DNA of 64,000 bases, taken from contig NW_003314427.1 of NCBI RefSeq assembly GCF_000143415.4, positions 1-64,000 on the forward strand, given 5' to 3'. This document shows, one piece after another, positions 14,472-62,964 of the stretch; positions within the stretch are counted from its first letter, which is position 1, and each line of letters begins with the position of its first letter. The stretch comes from Selaginella moellendorffii. Its lineage: Eukaryota; Plantae; Lycopodiophyta. The position numbers were made by a program, and so were the translations under genes. Below the pieces are notes generated by a model. That model saw only the letters and a program-made list of their open reading frames with translations, did not search any database and was not told where the DNA came from.

Positions 14472-16148
14472 TTAATTTGCAAGCATGTTTGCAAACATGA
14501 TGTAGCTTGACCCATCATTCATTTTAGATTTGATGAGATGATGAACAGCTGTTTCAGCAGATCTAATATCACTTTGGTATCTACAAGCAGCAAGAAAACA
14601 CCTCCAATCTAGAATATGTGGAGTGTAAGGCATGTTGTGTATGAGGTCTTTGGCTTGCTCAAGCTCGGATGAACGAGCTAGCACATCGATCATGCAACTA
14701 AAATGCTCAAAACTGGGTGTCACACCATAGTCTAGAGTTAAAGATCTAAAGCAACTATATACACTCTCCAGCTTTCCTAAAGCGCTATAAGCGATTAGTA
14801 CCGATGCAAACACAGAAGAGCTACATCTATCAACCATGTTTGCATTGTAATATGTACTCAATGCATCTCGAGGTGTTGCGTTTTGCGTAAAGGCAGCCAC
14901 CATAGATGTCCATGACACTGTGTCACTCACAGGCATTTCATCAAACAATCTCTTTGATAGTTGCAAGTTTCCATTCTGGGCATACGCAGCAAGCAGGGTA
15001 GTCCATGAGAATTCATCTTTGCGCTCCATTTGATCGAACAAATCCTTGCACTGGGTTAAATCTCCTTGCTGTGCATATGCACTGAGTAAGGCATTCCAGC
15101 AAACTAGATCCTTGAAAGGCATAGAATCAAACACGAACTTAGCTTCCTCGAGATGACCCTTTCGGGCATAAGCCACAAGCATGGAACTCCACGTCGCAAG
15201 ATCAAGCACGGGCATCTGGGATAGAAGTCTTTGCAAGCCTTCAAAATCAGCTTTGGATGAGAACAGATTCAGCATTGCTGTGGACGAAGCTAGATCCCAA
15301 TGAGGCATTTTGTTGTAGAGAGTTTCAGCCTCCAGCTTATTCCCGGTGCGGGAGTATACGCTCAACAAGGTAGTCCATGAAACAATGTCCTGTTCCGGCA
15401 TCGATTCAAAGACTTTGCAAGCTTGAACTTCGCTGCCACTATTCACGTATGCATGCAGCAGCGAGTTCCAAGACAATAGATTCGTCGCCGGCATACGTGC
15501 AAAGAATCGCTTCACATCACCAAGATGCCCGCCATTGGCATATGCAGAAAACATTGCATTCAAGGATACCAAGTTGTATTCTGGCATATAGTTAAACGAG
15601 TTCTTAGCTTCATGAAAATTTCCGCACTGGGAATAAGCGTAAATCATGCAAGTCCATGAAACAATGTCTCTTTGCGGCATGGAACCAAACAACAGCCTAG
15701 ATTCCTCTAGATACCCATTCTGGGCATATCCCGAGATCATGGCATTGCAGGAAACCAAATCCTTCTCTGGAATCGAATCAAAAATCTTCCTAGCTTTGGA
15801 AAGATTGCCCTCCCGGGCATAGGCGTCGAGAAGAACAGTGCAAGAGATTCGATTCCTGTGTGGCATTGTGTCGAAAATGCGCTGCGCTTGCTTGATATGC
15901 CCATTCCGGGCATAGGCGAGGAGGAGGAGATCCCAGGAGAAGGCATTCTTCGTGGGAATCTCATCGAAGACTCTCCGGGCGTGCTCCACGCTGCCACAGG
16001 CAGCGTACATCTCGATGAGCTTGTTGAGGAGGTAGACATCGTCGTCGCGATACAAGCTGGATTGGATCAATCGCTGGTGGAGATCTAGCGCCGCGGAGAG
16101 ATTGCCGCAGGACTGGATCAAATGCAAGCAGTGGTCGCGATTTTCCAT
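14472..16148 (-). CDS. PLS-class pentatricopeptide repeat protein (long 31-aa S/SS array, E domain, no DYW)
   Basis: Intronless 558 aa ORF; repeated MPxxDxVSWxxMxxAYAQxG units; C-terminal HFSCMIDVLAR..MPY..W..FLAAC region. Confidence 0.93.
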   Translation of the reverse strand: MENRDHCLHLIQSCGNLSAALDLHQRLIQSSLYRDDDVYLLNKLIEMYAACGSVEHARRVFDEIPTKNAFSWDLLLLAYARNGHIKQAQRIFDTMPHRNRISCTVLLDAYAREGNLSKARKIFDSIPEKDLVSCNAMISGYAQNGYLEESRLLFGSMPQRDIVSWTCMIYAYSQCGNFHEAKNSFNYMPEYNLVSLNAMFSAYANGGHLGDVKRFFARMPATNLLSWNSLLHAYVNSGSEVQACKVFESMPEQDIVSWTTLLSVYSRTGNKLEAETLYNKMPHWDLASSTAMLNLFSSKADFEGLQRLLSQMPVLDLATWSSMLVAYARKGHLEEAKFVFDSMPFKDLVCWNALLSAYAQQGDLTQCKDLFDQMERKDEFSWTTLLAAYAQNGNLQLSKRLFDEMPVSDTVSWTSMVAAFTQNATPRDALSTYYNANMVDRCSSSVFASVLIAYSALGKLESVYSCFRSLTLDYGVTPSFEHFSCMIDVLARSSELEQAKDLIHNMPYTPHILDWRCFLAACRYQSDIRSAETAVHHLIKSKMNDGSSYIMFANMLAN

Positions 16149-18251: not shown

Positions 18252-21200
18252 ATGGAAGGCTTTGGTGCCAACAGTGTCGAAGAACTGGATGTGGGCGATC
18301 TCGAGAGCGCGGGGCTAGAACCATCCGAGGCTCTACACTTCTACCAGGAGCTCCAGGTAGCGTTGCAAAGGGCAGGATTTGGAAAACTCGAGTCGATATG
18401 GAGGCTTGTATCTCAAAGTTTGCTCACGCCTCGACATCCTCACACACTCCATCAGCTCATGTACTACTCGATCTACAAGAATTGGGACGAGTTGCAATGC
18501 GGTCCACCACCGTATTGGTTTCCATCGCTGTATAAGTTTTCTTGCATTTTTTTTCTTCTTTTTTTTCTTCTTTGATCGCTCAAACTTACAGGGAGTTCGC
18601 AAGGAGTACGAGCATTGGACAGCTCCTCAAGGCTCGTGGAAACGAACTTCTCGGCAATAAGGTATACGTTGATCCAATCGCGAGCTTTACAAACTTCTAC
18701 AAGTTCTCGGTTCAGCATCCGGAGGTGAAAAAACCATTTCTTTCTCGTTCCTCCATAGCTCTAAACTTTTCATTCCAACTTCTCAGATTTTCTGGTCCAT
18801 TGCGTTTGAGAACCTGAGCTTGCATTTTTCTGTGGAACCCAAACAAATGGTGGACTCGAGTGATTCGTCACGTCCAGCAGGAAAATGGCTACCCGGTGCT
18901 GTCTTGAACGTTGCTCACTGTTGCTTGCTACCAAAGCCGAACATCGGAAAGACGGACGATAGCATCGCCATTATATGGAGAGACGAAGGTGGAGATGATT
19001 TGCCTCCCAGCACAATGAAACTCTCGGAGCTTCGGCACCATGTCAGGTGAATTTAAGTTCCATTCATCCATAGTTTACTAGGAACTTACGTTCTTCCTTT
19101 CTTTCGTTTTCTTTTTTCTCTTGCAGCCGGGTGGCATTCTCGCTTCAAGCTGCCGGTTTCCAAAGAGGAGATCGAATCGCCATCGACATGCCAATGCATA
19201 TCCACGCTGTTATCATCTACTTGGCCATAATTCTCGCGGGCTGCGTGGTAGTGTCAATAGCTGACAGCTTTGTTTCCTCGGAGATCGCTGCTCGCCTAGC
19301 GATCTCCAAAGCAAAGGGGATCTTCACTCAGGTGATTTCCAAAACTTTCACGTTTTCAGCTGTTACAAGAGCTTCTACAGGATGTGATAGTGAGAAGTGG
19401 TAAAACAATCCCGCTGTACAGGTAAAGAGTAAAGTCATATTTTTCGTGTTTTGCGTGATCCGGTTTTGCATAAAGTCGAGTTTTGGGAGCTAAACCACCA
19501 AAGGCAGTCGTCCTTCCATCGGATGGAAAATCAGTGCGTGTTCCAATCAGAAACCAAGACGTTTCTTGGGAGGAGTTCCTTGCAAATGGAAACGGCAGAA
19601 ACAGGTACACAGAAATGATCGAAAACTTTGGAGCATTGTCACTCAGATTCATCTGCAGATCTGGAGACGAGTTCCCGGCTGTGCAATTACCCGTCGAGGC
19701 ATGGACAAACATACTCTTCTCTTCAGGCACTACCGGTCTGAATGAAAAAACTCTCCAAACTCTACAAAGTCGGTGTTGTTTTCTTTTCTGAGATTCGTGC
19801 TTCCATTCAGCCGAGCCAAAAGCAATCCCGTGGAACCAGACAACTCCCATGAGATGTGCTGCCGATTCATGGGCACACTCCGATCTCCAAGCTGGTGATA
19901 TTTACTGCTGGCCAACGAATCTGGGATGGATGATGGGACCTTATCTTATCTCTGCTTGTCTACTCTCTGGAGCAACAATGGCACTCTACAACGGGTCTCC
20001 TCTCGGACGATCTTTCGGAAGGTTTGTCCAGGTGAAAAAATCGATTTTTATCTTCTTTTCTTGAGATGTTTCTGCGCAGGATGCGAGAGTTACGATTCTA
20101 GGAACCGTGCCGAGCATGGTAAAAACTTGGAAGAAGGTCAACTGCATGGATTCACTCGACTGGTCGAGTATCAGGTAATCTATAGGATGACGGAGAGAGT
20201 TTGTGCAACTCTTTAATATATTTTTGCGGCAGATCGTTTGGAACAACTGGTGAGGCTTCTAGTATCGATGACGATCTGTGGCTCAGCGCAAGAGCTTGGT
20301 ATAAACCAATTCTAGAGAGTTGTGGTGGAACCGAGCTTGGCTCGGCTTTCCTTCACGGATCACTGCTCCAACCGCAGGCCTTCGCAGCTTTCAGCACTCC
20401 GAGCTTGACAACGGCCTTTGTTCTTCTTGATGATTCCGGAAGACCATACGTAAGCTTTCATTCCGTTTGTAAATCGATCAGCATAAACGTTTGGAAAGCT
20501 TTCCAGCCAGATGACCAGCCTTGCTCTGGAGAGATTGCTCTCTTCCCCAAGCTTCTTGGAGCTTCATACACGCTGTTAAACGCTGATCATCACAAAGTCT
20601 ACTTCGAAGGCATGCCTGTGATCAATGGGATTGTAAGTACTTTTCAGAAGATTTATCATCGTGAAGTTCCTGAAGTTCTTCGCGTGTCTAGCAACTTCGG
20701 AGACATGGCGACGTGTTTGAGCGAACGGCCGGAGGCTTCTATAGAGCTAAAGGTCGAGCAGACGATACTATGAACCTTGGAGGCATCAAAGTAAGAAAAA
20801 AGAGTCTGTTTTGTTTCGTTTTTCTCCAGGTTCTCTGGTTGATGATCGACTGTTCTTATGACGCAGGTGAGTTCTGTGGAGATCGAGCGAGTTTGCAATA
20901 CCGCGCACAACAGCGTTCTTGAGACCGCAGCCATAGCCATGCCTCAAGGAAAAGGCGGCGGCCCCGACAACTTGATCGTCGCTGCGGTTCTCAAAGGTGC
21001 TCTTCCACCAGGTGAAAATCACCCAGAAATGCTCAAGAGGATCTTCTCGAAGGCTCTCCATGACAACTTAAATCCTTTGTTCAAGGTGAGTGAGCACGAG
21101 AAAAAAAAAAAAGTTCCTTGCGCAAAATTTGATTTTTGTTTTTTTTTTTTTGTTTTGTTTTGCTTGAAAGGTCCATGCGGTGGTTCTTCTTCCGGAATTT

Positions 21201-21269
21201 CCTCGCACAGCGTCAAACAAAATCATGCGAAGAGTCCTTCGAGCACAAATGCCGCGCAGCAAGCTCTGA
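18252..21269 (+). CDS. Peroxisomal acyl-activating enzyme 17/18
   Basis: [34 protein letters not shown] and [15 protein letters not shown] motifs; C-terminal PTS1 -SKL*; many short introns. Confidence 0.92.
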
Positions 21270-22710: not shown

Positions 22711-23892
22711 ATGCTAGCGCGGCTATGGCAATTTCCATGGCGCTATCGCCCTACATTGTCGATCGCAAGGTAAGCGAGCAGCTTTTCGGAGTTTCTAGCG
22801 CCTAGGTCTGAATGGATTGGCCGCACAGGTCCATGCGCGGCGCGGTCGCCACGATTCCATCGCCTCTATCACTCGGTATGCGTGAAGAAATTTTTGATCC
22901 AGCCTTAGATATGGATTTTCTTTATTCCAGGCTTTTCTCGCAGCTACTCGCGTAGCGATAGCGAGGATTTCGATGAAGAAGAGGAAGTGGACGACGATGA
23001 GGACTTGGATATCGATCCCGAGGTATGGGACGAGGATCCGGACGGCGCCAAGAATCTGGATCCAACTTACGAGTTCCCGAAGCCTACCACCGAGACAAAG
23101 TTCTACGGCTTTTTCGACAAGAACTACAAACCCAGCTCGGAGTCGGAGGTGGACACGGAGGACGACGAGGACGTGGATTACTCCTTCTCGACGGACTACA
23201 AGTTCTCGCCATTCGCGAGAGCTGGAGTTTCGTACGAGGACTGGATCGAGATGAAGAACCAACACGATTCCATGCCGAAAAAGAGGAAGAAGGACGACGA
23301 CTTGGACGTTGATGACTTCGACGTTGAGAAGCTGCGAGGGGACATACCTTTCGACAAGTGGACGGAGCTCAAGCGCCAGTTTAGCATGACCACGGATGTC
23401 AAGGACGAAGATCTCGACTTTGTGAGGGATCGTCCCAAGGGCCAACGAAGTGGACTGGATCCCAATCCCAACGAGAGCTTGCACTACAAGACGATGCCCA
23501 AGAACGCCACCAGCGAGGAGAGGATGAGATACTTCCGCGGGGAGCTAGACAAGTACTTGAGGATAGCAAACAAGTACGACTACACGCCTCGCTTCTTCTC
23601 CTCGGATCCTCACATCGAGCGAGTGAAAGCGAAGCTGTCGACCATGAAGCCAGATGCGGATGGGATTTACAGGAACACGATCGAGTATATCTCGGACATC
23701 GACGTGCTGCTCTACGCTTACAGGGTGGTGAAGGCCAGAAAGATGGGACCGGGTACAGATTGCACGACGATACCCATCGATAACATCAAGATGGACTGGT
23801 TCTACAAGACGCAGAAGGAGCTGAGAGATGGAACTTACGAGTTTCCAGGTAGCTTTACGGTTTACGTGAAGAAGAAGAGCTTCAAGAAATAG
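22711..23892 (+). CDS. Putative mitochondrial 355-aa protein: presequence, acidic domain, then group II intron maturase RT0/N-terminal segment only
   Basis: Exons 22711-22769, 22829-22875 and 22931-23892 splice in frame. N-terminus MLARLWQFPWRYRPTLSIARSMRG...FSRSY|S. C-terminus GIYRNTIEYISDIDVLLYAYRVVK..GPGTD..IDNIKMDWFYK..ELRDGTYEF..VYVKK. Confidence 0.75.
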
Positions 23893-23920
23893 CGGTTCTC
23901 TACAACGAAAGCTGGTCTAG

Positions 23921-25526
<1,606 letters not shown>

Positions 25527-59498: not shown

Positions 59499-62400
59499 TG
59501 GAGGGACCTTGCGCGAATAAGTTAGTGACCCCTCCATCTTTCTTTCGGGAGTATCATCAAGGGGTTCACTCGGCACCGGTTCATCCAGTGTTTACTTTCC
59601 AAGCTCGTTTTTATAACAAGAGGTCTCCTATTCTTCTCTCCGTGTTGGTTGATACAGGTTCGAGTTTATCTTCTATTGCTCGACCTGTTGCCACACGTTG
59701 TCGTCTACACTTGCGTCGTGCGGCGGATCCAGTTTTCATTCTTTATGGCAATGGCCGTACACATGCATGTGCACGAGATGAGGCGGACCTGGTTGTGCGT
59801 GTGGACGATCTCGAGCTTGAGTTGCAGTCGTTGCGGGTGGTGCCGAGTTAAGCTTTTGACCTCATTCTTGGTATGGATTGGTTGCAGCACAATCATGCCA
59901 AGTGTGACTTTGAGGCTTTTCCCCCTTGTCTCATACTTCCTTATGTTTCATCCATTCCTCTCACTTCTGTACCTCTTCGTCCCTCTACTTCTACCTCTGC
60001 TTCCATTACTTTTGTTCCCCCATTATTTCCTCTTGTGTTTCCATCTTGTTCTGCTCTTCCCTTTTCCGATCCCTCCGATGATCTTTGTGTTGTAGCTGTT
60101 GATCAGCTCATGAAGGAGTATTCTGATCTCTTTGAATTTGACCTATCGTCTGGGGCCAAGATTGCCACACGTCATCCCATTCCAACCGGGGATGCTTGTC
60201 CAATCAAGGTTCCTGTTCGTCGTCGGTCACCCAAGGAGATCAAGATTTTACGTGCAAACGTCAAGGAGATGTTGGAGAAGGGTGTTATTCGGAAGTCGCG
60301 GAGTCCTTGGGCATGTGAACCTCATCTTGTGACGAAGCCTGATGGGAGTATTCGTTTCTGCATCGACTATCGTCCGTTAAATGAAGTGACGATCCCGGAC
60401 GTGTACCCTCTTCCTCACACTGCTGATCTCTTGGATCGTCTGGGGCGAAGTCGTTGGTTCACCAAGCTAGATCTTGCTTCTGGGTATTGGCAAGTACCGA
60501 TGGCTGAAGACGATATTCCTAAGACTGCTTTTCGTACACCATTTGGTTTGTACGAGTTTTTGGTGATGCCGTTTGGTTTGAACAATGCTCCAGCAACTTT
60601 TCAGCGAATGATGGACGAGGTTCTTTGCGATATGCCAGAGGTGACAGCTGACTTCATTGATGATGTCTTGATCCACTCGGAGGGGATGTGGGAGGAGCAT
60701 GTTCGTGATGTTTGTAAAGTGTTGGATCGGCTACGGGACGTTGGTTTAAAGCTGAAGCGGTCGAAGTGCGTGTTTGGGTCCAAGGACACAACTTATCTTG
60801 GGTACCGTATTTCTCGTGAGGGTTTGCAAGTTGATCCTGACAAACTTGTGGCTGTTCTAAAGTTCCCTACTCCGAAGTGTGTGAATGATGTGCAGCGCTT
60901 TTTGGGTAAGGTGCAGTATCTCGGTCGTTTTGTGGATCATCTTTCCGATCGCACTTTACCATTGCGAGCGTTGTTGAAGTCATCAACGTCATCTTTCATC
61001 TGGTCTCCCGATTGTGAGTGGGCGTTCGTGAATCTCAAAGAGCTATTGACGACTCCTCCGGTTTTGGCATATCCTGACTACACTCGACCTTTTATTTTGC
61101 GCGTGGATGCTTCTGATATTGGTCTTGGAGGTGTGTTGATGCAAGAGAGCTCGAGTGTGCCTGGTCAGCGCCATCCCATTGCATACATAAGCCGTACATT
61201 ACAACCAGCGGAGATGAACTACTCCACGACGGAGAAGGAGTGTTTAGCAGCAGTCTGGGGTTTCGAGAAACTTCATGCCTATCTACATGGTTCTCGGACG
61301 TTACTTGAAGAAGGTGACCATGCTGCTGTTACTTCATTATTGAAGCGGAAGAACCTGGTTGGTCGTACGGCTCGATGGGCTTTGAAGCTTCAGATATATG
61401 ATTTCGATGTTGTTCATCGCCCAGGGAGTTCTATGGCTGATGCTGATGCCCTTTCTCGAGCTCCTCTTCCTTCTCCACTCACTTCTCATGTTTATGATGA
61501 ACCTGTTGTTCCAGCATCTGTGGATTTTCTAGATGAGGATTCTGTGCCGTCGGCGGTTGCTGTCCTTGACGTTCAGTGTCCACAGGGCGTAGAGCAAGAT
61601 CTACCTTCTCTAAATGAGGTTCGCGAGGCTCAAAAGATTGAGCCATGGATTCGAAGGCTTCGAGATGGGTTTGAGAATCCTGCATCACTTGCTGATGACT
61701 TGCCTTTTCGGCATTTACATTCTCAATATCGCCTTGAAGATGGCCTTCTTTATTTTGTGGGGACGGATCCTGATGCTCATTTACGGCTGGTGGTGCCTTC
61801 GGTGTTTATTCCGCGGTTTCTCCATGCCTACCATGATTCTCCTATTCTAGGTGGGCATATGGGACACCGTCGTGTCACCGAGAAGTTGCGCAGATCTTTC
61901 TATTGGCCAGAGATGCGACGTGATATTATCCGGTATGTGCGTAGCTGCGTTTGGTGCCAAGCTCGTAATACTCCCCCTTGTGCTGCGGAAGGACGATTGG
62001 AGTCAATTGCAGTTTCTCGTCCGTTTGAGTTGGTGGCGTTTGATCTTATGGGACCTTTTCCGCGATCGACTGCTGGCAATGAGTATGTTATTATTGCTTC
62101 TGACTACTTGACTCGTTGGGTGGAAGTTGGTGCTCTTGCTAGTGCCTCTGCAACTGCTGTTGGATACTTCCTCCTCAATCGAGTGGTGTTCCAGCATTCT
62201 TGTCCAGAACGGATTCTTTCGGATAATGGTCCTGCATTTATGGCTGAGGTATTTCATGTTTTGACATCTCGGTTGGGGATACGCCACACTTTTACGAGTG
62301 CTTATCATCCACAATCAGACGGTCTGGTGGAACGGCTCGTTCGGACATTCAAAGGGATGATTGCGAAGTATGTGAACTTTCAACATTCGGATTGGGATGG

Positions 62401-62964
62401 TTATTTACCGTCTCTTCGGTATGCTTATGTCACAGGGGTGCAGAGTTCTGTTGGTGCTTCACCATATAAACTTCTATATGGTCATGATCCAATATTACCA
62501 ACAGAGCTAGGTTTACCTTCGCGATTGCCACGAGCTCCTGATGCTAGGTCATGGGATCAATATTTGACAAGCATTCTTCCACTTGTCCGAGCAGAGTCTG
62601 CTGAACACTTAGGCCGCGTACAAGTGGGACAACAACGGCGCTACAATTCCCATCATCGTCCACCAGCGGAGTACAAAGTGGATGATTTGGTGTTAGTCCG
62701 TTTTCCCCATCTTACGGTGCGTGGTTTATCTAAGGGGCTCCTTGCGCAGTGGAAAGGACCGTATCGGGTATGCGGCAAGTTGGACCACAAGTTTATGAGG
62801 TTCGGCATGACGTTCAGCAGGCTGATCCTCCGGAGATTGTGCATGTGCAGCGGTTAAAACGCTTCATACAGAGGGATCAGGAGCAGTTAATACCGTCTAC
62901 AGATCCACCGATGCCTCCTCCTGACGTTCCTCCAGATCCCGGCCCATCTACAAGAGAACCCTGA
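59474..62964 (+). pseudogene. pol: Pol (PR-RT-RH-INT) in the -1 frame, with an in-frame TAA at 59849 and a frameshift near 62775
   Basis: LVDTGSS protease, MPFGL..FIDD RT, VDASD RNase H, HHCC and DDE integrase; the WKGPY tail continues in a shifted frame (VYEV..VHVQRLK). Confidence 0.9.

Follow-up and report, generated by a model that had tools for sequence, protein, structure and literature searches.

Land plant mitochondria need MatR and four nuclear maturases (nMAT1-4) to splice their 20-plus group II introns; in these proteins RT0 is missing or degenerate, and how such factors find their RNA is an open question (PMC9321910), one that has likewise been raised for MatK (PMC13172542). RT0 of bacterial maturases contacts intron domain IV through basic residues, whereas MatR and MatK are without RT0 and the nMATs have a degenerate one (see PMC9321910, PMC13172542). 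Reviews name MatR and nMAT1-4 as the sole maturase-type factors of plant mitochondria, and the MatK complex includes a protein of unknown function, EMB3120/SWL1 (PMC13172542), a conceivable relative of the family described below.

The described systems closest to the gene reported here, LOC112343584 of Selaginella moellendorffii, differ from it in the parts of the maturase that they retain. Like LOC112343584, nMAT1-4 are nuclear, derive from mitochondrial group II intron maturases and have a homologous RT0, and their added N-terminal organellar leader has a predicted counterpart there; unlike it, they retain (degenerate) RT1-7 and the X/thumb, with En as well in nMAT3 and nMAT4, while LOC112343584 retains RT0 only. 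Judged by the descriptions of the nMATs, it is further set apart by the long acidic stretch that separates its leader from RT0 and by a size of about half theirs or less. MatR (mat-nad1i728g2) and MatK, which act on several introns, are also plant organellar maturase derivatives with ancestral parts missing, but they form the mirror image of LOC112343584, since RT0 and the N-terminus are gone while X and the later RT motifs are kept (PMC9321910, PMC5174742). Their genes are in the organelles and LOC112343584 is nuclear; the mitochondrial DNA of S. moellendorffii has no matR (PMC5654404). The nmatRT and nmatRX genes of Pelargonium are a precedent for a plant maturase divided over separate nuclear genes that each hold part of the domain set behind their own targeting leader (PMC5174742). 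The Pelargonium pieces, however, comprise RT II-IV in one gene and RT V-VII plus X in the other, and their origin is recent and limited to one genus, whereas the family described below has RT0 and the start of RT1 and was found in lycophytes, ferns, a conifer and angiosperms. In the full-text literature open to our search, no RT0-only or mini-maturase protein is described. The family reported here is derived from a maturase and has a minimal, RT0-only architecture.

LOC112343584 lies on the S. moellendorffii nuclear scaffold GL377731.1, the first 64,000 nucleotides of which (the window) were analysed under identical numbering. The gene, its parts and its neighbours are as follows.

about 19711-21269, + strand: AMP-binding/acyl-activating enzyme gene, upstream of LOC112343584
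21465-22457, - strand: LHC (chlorophyll a/b-binding) protein gene, upstream neighbour of LOC112343584
22687..22694, - strand: telo-box AAACCCTA, 17 nt upstream of the LOC112343584 ATG
22711..22769, + strand: exon 1, ATG at 22711; aa 1-20, the first part of the basic, acid-free N-terminus; next intron in phase 2
22770..22828, + strand: intron 1, GT..AG, 59 nt
22829..22875, + strand: exon 2, aa 20-36, the remainder of the presequence-like region; next intron in phase 1
22876..22930, + strand: intron 2, GT..AG, 55 nt, 3 codons ahead of the RSY motif
22931..23892, + strand: exon 3, TAG stop at 23890-23892; codes for the entire presumed mature protein
22939..22950, + strand: RSY/S (the slash marks the cut), a -3 Arg motif of mitochondrial processing peptidase type, predicted cleavage after Tyr41
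22948..23589, + strand: acidic middle, aa 42-255, 29% Asp+Glu, net charge -30
23590..23889, + strand: C-terminal domain, aa 256-355, RT0/N-terminal extension and first RT1 residues; net charge +6, Lys-rich end
23921..25477, - strand: alpha-tubulin gene, convergent neighbour, stop 28 nt from the LOC112343584 stop
25967 onward, - strand: IQ-domain gene, neighbour beyond alpha-tubulin

A brute-force search through splice combinations yielded a model whose translation equals XP_024523073.1 (P0001, 355 aa) letter for letter, and the gene model of an earlier note on this DNA, with its two short GT-AG introns, is therefore correct. The "intact 355-aa frame" of that note stands as regards the intact gene, but 355 aa is the length of the complete spliced protein and the open frame of exon 3 has 320 codons. 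The basic N-terminus ending in FSRSY/S and the Asp/Glu-rich middle that it had described are both present: residues 1-44 include no Asp or Glu, with a net charge of +6 over residues 1-40, and leader, middle and C-domain together show net charges of +6, -30 and +6. The telo-box counted there as an argument against debris is also present, but is weak evidence by itself, only its position being suggestive, since the window holds 6 matches where 1.9 are expected. Gene order on the allelic scaffold GL377665.1 is the same as around LOC112343584. The stops of LOC112343584 and the alpha-tubulin gene (23890-23923) are so close, 28 nt apart, that the two 3' UTRs must overlap as antisense transcripts.

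We regard it as nearly certain from the sequence comparisons that the C-terminal ~90 residues share their ancestry with the N-terminal extension/RT0 region found in group II intron maturases. In an exhaustive phmmer search of 1.84 billion representative proteins with the last 130 aa as query (cut-off E <= 1e-3), 16 proteins matched, true maturases among them at E 3e-6 to 7e-4. RVT_1 is carried by six of these matches (P0008, P0010, P0013 and P0015, with the maturase X domain in addition, and P0016 and P0004, with RVT_1 alone); in P0008 the maturase is joined to a cox1 exon and also includes an HNH endonuclease domain. The maturase matches span 70-90 residues and end where RVT_1 starts:

Maturase P0008: residues 241-317 matched, RVT_1 from 316
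Maturase P0010: residues 60-147 matched, RVT_1 from 146
Maturase P0015: residues 230-315 matched, RVT_1 from 310
Maturase P0004: residues 103-185 matched, RVT_1 from 181
Maturase P0016: residues 37-122 matched, RVT_1 from 118

An hhalign comparison of 15 family C-domains with 10 maturase N-termini gave a probability of 99.5% and E 2.6e-22, over an alignment that spans aa 267-354 of the LOC112343584 protein and reaches the RT1 opening "RRVxIPK". By these scores the match is well past chance, and the RT0 assignment of the earlier note is upheld. Neither the LOC112343584 domain alone nor the angiosperm family profile matched any PDB sequence, and no family member therefore sits in a solved complex; the mixed family profile had a sole sequence match there, to residues 33-97 of LtrA (E 0.12). 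Pfam gave no domain in the LOC112343584 protein even at E <= 10, hence no RVT_1 or X/thumb, nor any in six relatives, which shows no more than the absence of the family from Pfam.

Predicted structures appear concordant with the sequence evidence and weaker than it. The ESM Atlas model of aa 258-355 reached TM 0.67-0.71 (query-normalised) to group II RT/maturase clusters. When the AF2 model made for the Diphasiastrum domain (pLDDT 80) was compared with 48,161 PDB chains, the group II-like RT G2L4 ranked first, through its N-terminal residues 1-64, at a VIA-align wide Z of 4.4, which is below significance (rmsd 3.3 Å over 51 residues, 22% identity). With VIA-align wide Z at or below 4.4, this first rank is merely weakly supportive, and it is not independent evidence because the alignment for the second AF2 model contained maturases. 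Foldseek searches of the PDB with the two AF2 models (pLDDT 72 and 80) returned nothing below E 2.

In group II IEPs and IEP-like proteins (LtrA 33-97, T.el4h RT and G2L4 1-64), the N-terminal extension/RT0 and first RT1 residues align with the LOC112343584 C-domain, and the RT0 region of all three contacts intron domain IV or the template. Unlike group II IEPs, the LOC112343584 protein is without polymerase, thumb and endonuclease and is encoded by a nuclear gene with spliceosomal introns rather than by an intron; its acidic domain has no counterpart in LtrA, T.el4h RT or G2L4. By these comparisons the C-domain (~100 aa) descends from a group II intron RT/maturase of mitochondrial type, from which it keeps the RT0/N-terminal extension and RT1 as far as its first half.

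LOC112343584 is one member of an old unnamed family rather than a Selaginella oddity. The phmmer search and two later profile searches that started from it found members in lycophytes, ferns, one conifer (Cryptomeria japonica) and >340 angiosperm clusters (90% identity), whose range takes in Acorus and Araceae as well as Proteaceae, legumes and Asteraceae; one of the searches gave 345 clusters. Bryophytes and algae yielded no member in these searches, which could have missed one, and no Arabidopsis or rice orthologue occurs among the 120 listed of the 345 matches. Almost all named members are annotated as uncharacterized or hypothetical, with spurious automatic names for a few, and members carry no Pfam domain except for one gene model fused to its neighbour. 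Some (P0139 from Malus, P0112, P0130 and P0043) are called methionyl-tRNA formyltransferase or GatC; P0139 at least is a fusion model with an adjoining Formyl_trans_N gene, and such names look like annotation artefacts.

Members share gene structure and layout as well as the domain. S. moellendorffii has a paralogue (LOC9642249/LOC9634708; 342 aa) with two alleles and the same exon plan, located at L002 3001-4159 (GL377565.1) and at L007/L008, which is nearer the family consensus than LOC112343584; the member from Diphasiastrum complanatum has 273 aa (P0003). Two leader mini-exons followed by one large exon, with introns in phases 2 and then 1, make up the three-exon plan of P0001, its paralogue P0002, Diphasiastrum P0003 and Telopea P0037, and in the last three the phase-1 intron has a position equivalent to that in LOC112343584, shortly before the presumed start of the mature protein. 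The charge pattern of plus, minus, plus recurs in all nine members examined (LOC112343584 and 8 others). As in the other proteins of the 15-member alignment, the RT0 module of LOC112343584 breaks off inside RT1, and a Lys/Arg tail comes after it. The RT0 regions of 14 family members and of 10 maturases, plant nMAT and matR clades not among them, fall on opposite sides of one branch in a maximum-likelihood tree (support 89/86), a split found in 87% of bootstrap trees; branching order within the family follows plant phylogeny, with the two Selaginella paralogues as sisters.

Two variations within the family may be recorded here. Ferns (Ceratopteris and Adiantum) have two subgroups, one of which retains "V.VPLPKRK", the equivalent of the RT1 opening, and a poly-Lys tail, while the other ends earlier, after "GTY.F" (the sets compared were P0012/P0021-23/P0027/P0029 and P0014/P0020/P0024-26/P0028/P0030-33). 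The acidic middle of seed-plant members (e.g. aa 90-170 of P0037) is more than low complexity, since it contains repeated, near-invariant Trp-acidic motifs, LW(T/S)GSD(E/D), with a column conservation of 0.8-0.94.

Plant mitochondrial presequences of the -3 Arg class end in R-x-Y/F/L followed by A or S. Leaders of the family have a median of 0 acidic residues in the first 30 (117 full-length members), and those of angiosperms typically start MARR.C.RL. RSYA is found at about position 54-60 in 58 of the 117, in the place that matches RSY/S of LOC112343584. The leader, which is basic, free of acidic residues and little conserved, has mini-exons of its own and closes with a conserved RSY(A/S), and this is the pattern of an organellar presequence. 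It fits what is expected of plant mitochondria, which are the likely predicted destination, and looks mitochondrial rather than plastidial. The LOC112343584 protein may instead have a plastid, dual or nuclear location, and its Lys-rich tail could equally be a nuclear signal.

Our data suggest an RT0-derived, nuclear-encoded protein that would be imported into organelles and act in trans on group II intron ribonucleoproteins (RNPs), a reading that we favour by a modest degree when taken as a whole. The leader would carry the protein into mitochondria and be removed after RSY; the RT0 helices and the Lys/Arg tail would then bind organellar RNA, much as bacterial RT0 binds domain IV of the intron, and through such binding the protein would probably act in trans on group II intron RNPs. 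It may anchor RNA on behalf of plant maturases that have no RT0 or a degenerate one, or it may modulate such maturases, while the acidic region would probably provide protein contacts or self-masking. Since RT0 contacts domain IV in bacteria and is absent or degenerate in plant maturases, a free-standing, conserved RT0 with a Lys/Arg tail is best read as a putative RNA-binding partner or modulator in trans. A conserved, nuclear-encoded RT0-module protein would be an obvious candidate for the missing RNA anchor or for an RNP regulator, and we suggest a role in splicing tentatively within this reading. We know of no protein in which an isolated RT0 module binds RNA. The family is also a clean case in which one sub-domain of a retroelement protein has been domesticated.

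Of the other explanations, the one that survives best, though we think it somewhat unlikely, is that the RT0-derived domain was co-opted for work unrelated to group II intron splicing. The protein could be a general RNA/DNA chaperone, an organellar ribosome-assembly or nucleoid protein, or an acidic protein of the nucleus or nucleolus, with the basic tail serving as nuclear localisation signal. Such variants would suit the combination of acidic tract and basic tail, which recalls nucleolin-like and histone-chaperone-like proteins ("nucleolin" is the automatic annotation of some members), and would suit the retention of two paralogues in a plant whose mitochondria are without matR (PMC5654404). 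They sit less well with the presequence pattern of the leader, and the family has no match to any PDB chain, plant mitoribosome chains being assumed to be included. Nucleic-acid binding within group II intron RNPs is, moreover, the sole known function of RT0 (PMC9321910).

A bolder possibility, which we judge improbable, is that plant organellar maturases are two-piece proteins, with LOC112343584 and its relatives as the imported, nuclear-encoded RT0-RT1 half that pairs in trans with MatR (RT2-7 plus X) or perhaps MatK. The end of the LOC112343584 protein inside RT1 is consistent with this, as are the absence of the N-terminal RT0 region from MatR and MatK (PMC9321910) and the complementary boundaries of matR, which has RT subdomains II-VII plus X (PMC5174742). 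In Pelargonium, matR persists, and is transcribed, as two separate nuclear genes (PMC5174742), and all members of the RT0-only family that were found are from vascular plants. In S. moellendorffii itself, however, the mitochondrial DNA is without matR, and nad4L takes its place in the nad1i728 intron (PMC5654404). If this explanation were true, gene fission and nuclear transfer, rather than plain loss, would explain the "missing" N-termini of MatR and MatK.

Selection and conservation bear on whether the locus is functional at all. The allele on GL377665.1, compared up to window position 23919, shows 19 differences over 1068 exonic sites and 10 over 395 non-exonic ones, and its dN/dS is 0.18 (Nei-Gojobori; 11 synonymous and 8 non-synonymous changes); half of the non-synonymous changes (4 of 8) fall in the leader and one, a conservative Lys to Arg, in the RT0 domain. 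Alleles of the paralogue have a dN/dS of 0.28. Column conservation across 96 full-length members from angiosperms rises from 0.26-0.47 for the leader to 0.90-0.97 for RT0 domain and tail; the mature N-terminal part is mostly at 0.72-0.94 and falls to 0.40 around residues 101-120. LOC112343584 is the faster-evolving of the Selaginella paralogues (branch 0.88 vs 0.35), departs from the family at three near-invariant positions of the domain alignment (Pro23, Arg26 and Val33) and has ~80 additional residues in its middle region. Its role may thus have been narrowed or altered, though the allelic dN/dS still indicates constraint.

Signs of expression are indirect. Between 27 and 58% of the 31-mers of the locus were present in 20 runs from seven studies (at least half of them in 13 runs), which are small contig sets taken to be RNA by guess. 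Relatives from one angiosperm and one fern occur on contigs of 1.0-1.5 kb that hold an uninterrupted, intronless full coding sequence plus flanks and look like spliced mRNA.

By the family and allele data, LOC112343584 is very improbable as a decaying fragment of a transferred maturase gene whose frame is open by luck. A pseudogene would account for the survival of just a fragment of the ancestral protein and for the long branch of LOC112343584, but it is already contradicted by the family, in which architecture and gene structure are kept across vascular plants and angiosperm members, among the matches listed, are 64-89% identical to the Telopea protein, and by the allelic dN/dS with its single conservative change in the RT0 domain. 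By these measures LOC112343584 is a nuclear gene that is intact and spliced and evolves under purifying selection, in agreement with the earlier view that it is not simple debris, and the lycophyte and fern homologues looked for under that view exist.

The remaining points concern where the protein ends. Its stop falls after VYVKKK, which aligns with the RT1 opening "RRVxIPK", ahead of the "RPLGI" part. Thus, the earlier statement that the protein stops just where RT1 would begin is right as to its RT0-only extent, while the actual end lies inside RT1, after its first half. We searched the entire window by tblastn with seven maturase proteins (five with RVT_1 plus the X domain or most of RVT_1, and two N-terminal fragments), with 24237-24277, inside the alpha-tubulin gene, masked as N. 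Only 23635-23868 matched (E 1e-7 to 2e-11); the remaining matches had E > 0.3, and no other RT1-7, X or En sequence was found in the 64 kb. Together with the empty Pfam result, this bears out the claimed absence of YADD, X and En. The adjoining tubulin gene, with its stop 28 nt past that of LOC112343584, leaves no space for downstream RT exons, and all relatives in the 15-member family alignment terminate at the same point.

That LOC112343584 is an ordinary nMAT with overlooked RT1-7/X exons, reached for example through the GT that follows CAG at 23849 (CAG/GTAGC), has a negligible probability and is ruled out by the tblastn result, the adjoining tubulin gene, the common end of the family and the homology of the residues past 23849 to the RT1 opening/first strand; with no such exons in the window, that splice route is unsupported and the distinction from the nMAT1-4 type, drawn at the outset, is sound. 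Elsewhere in the window, AT-rich parts contain long open reading frames at 59873-62857 (+ strand, 994 aa) and 14472-16148 (- strand, 558 aa), which could be transposon genes.
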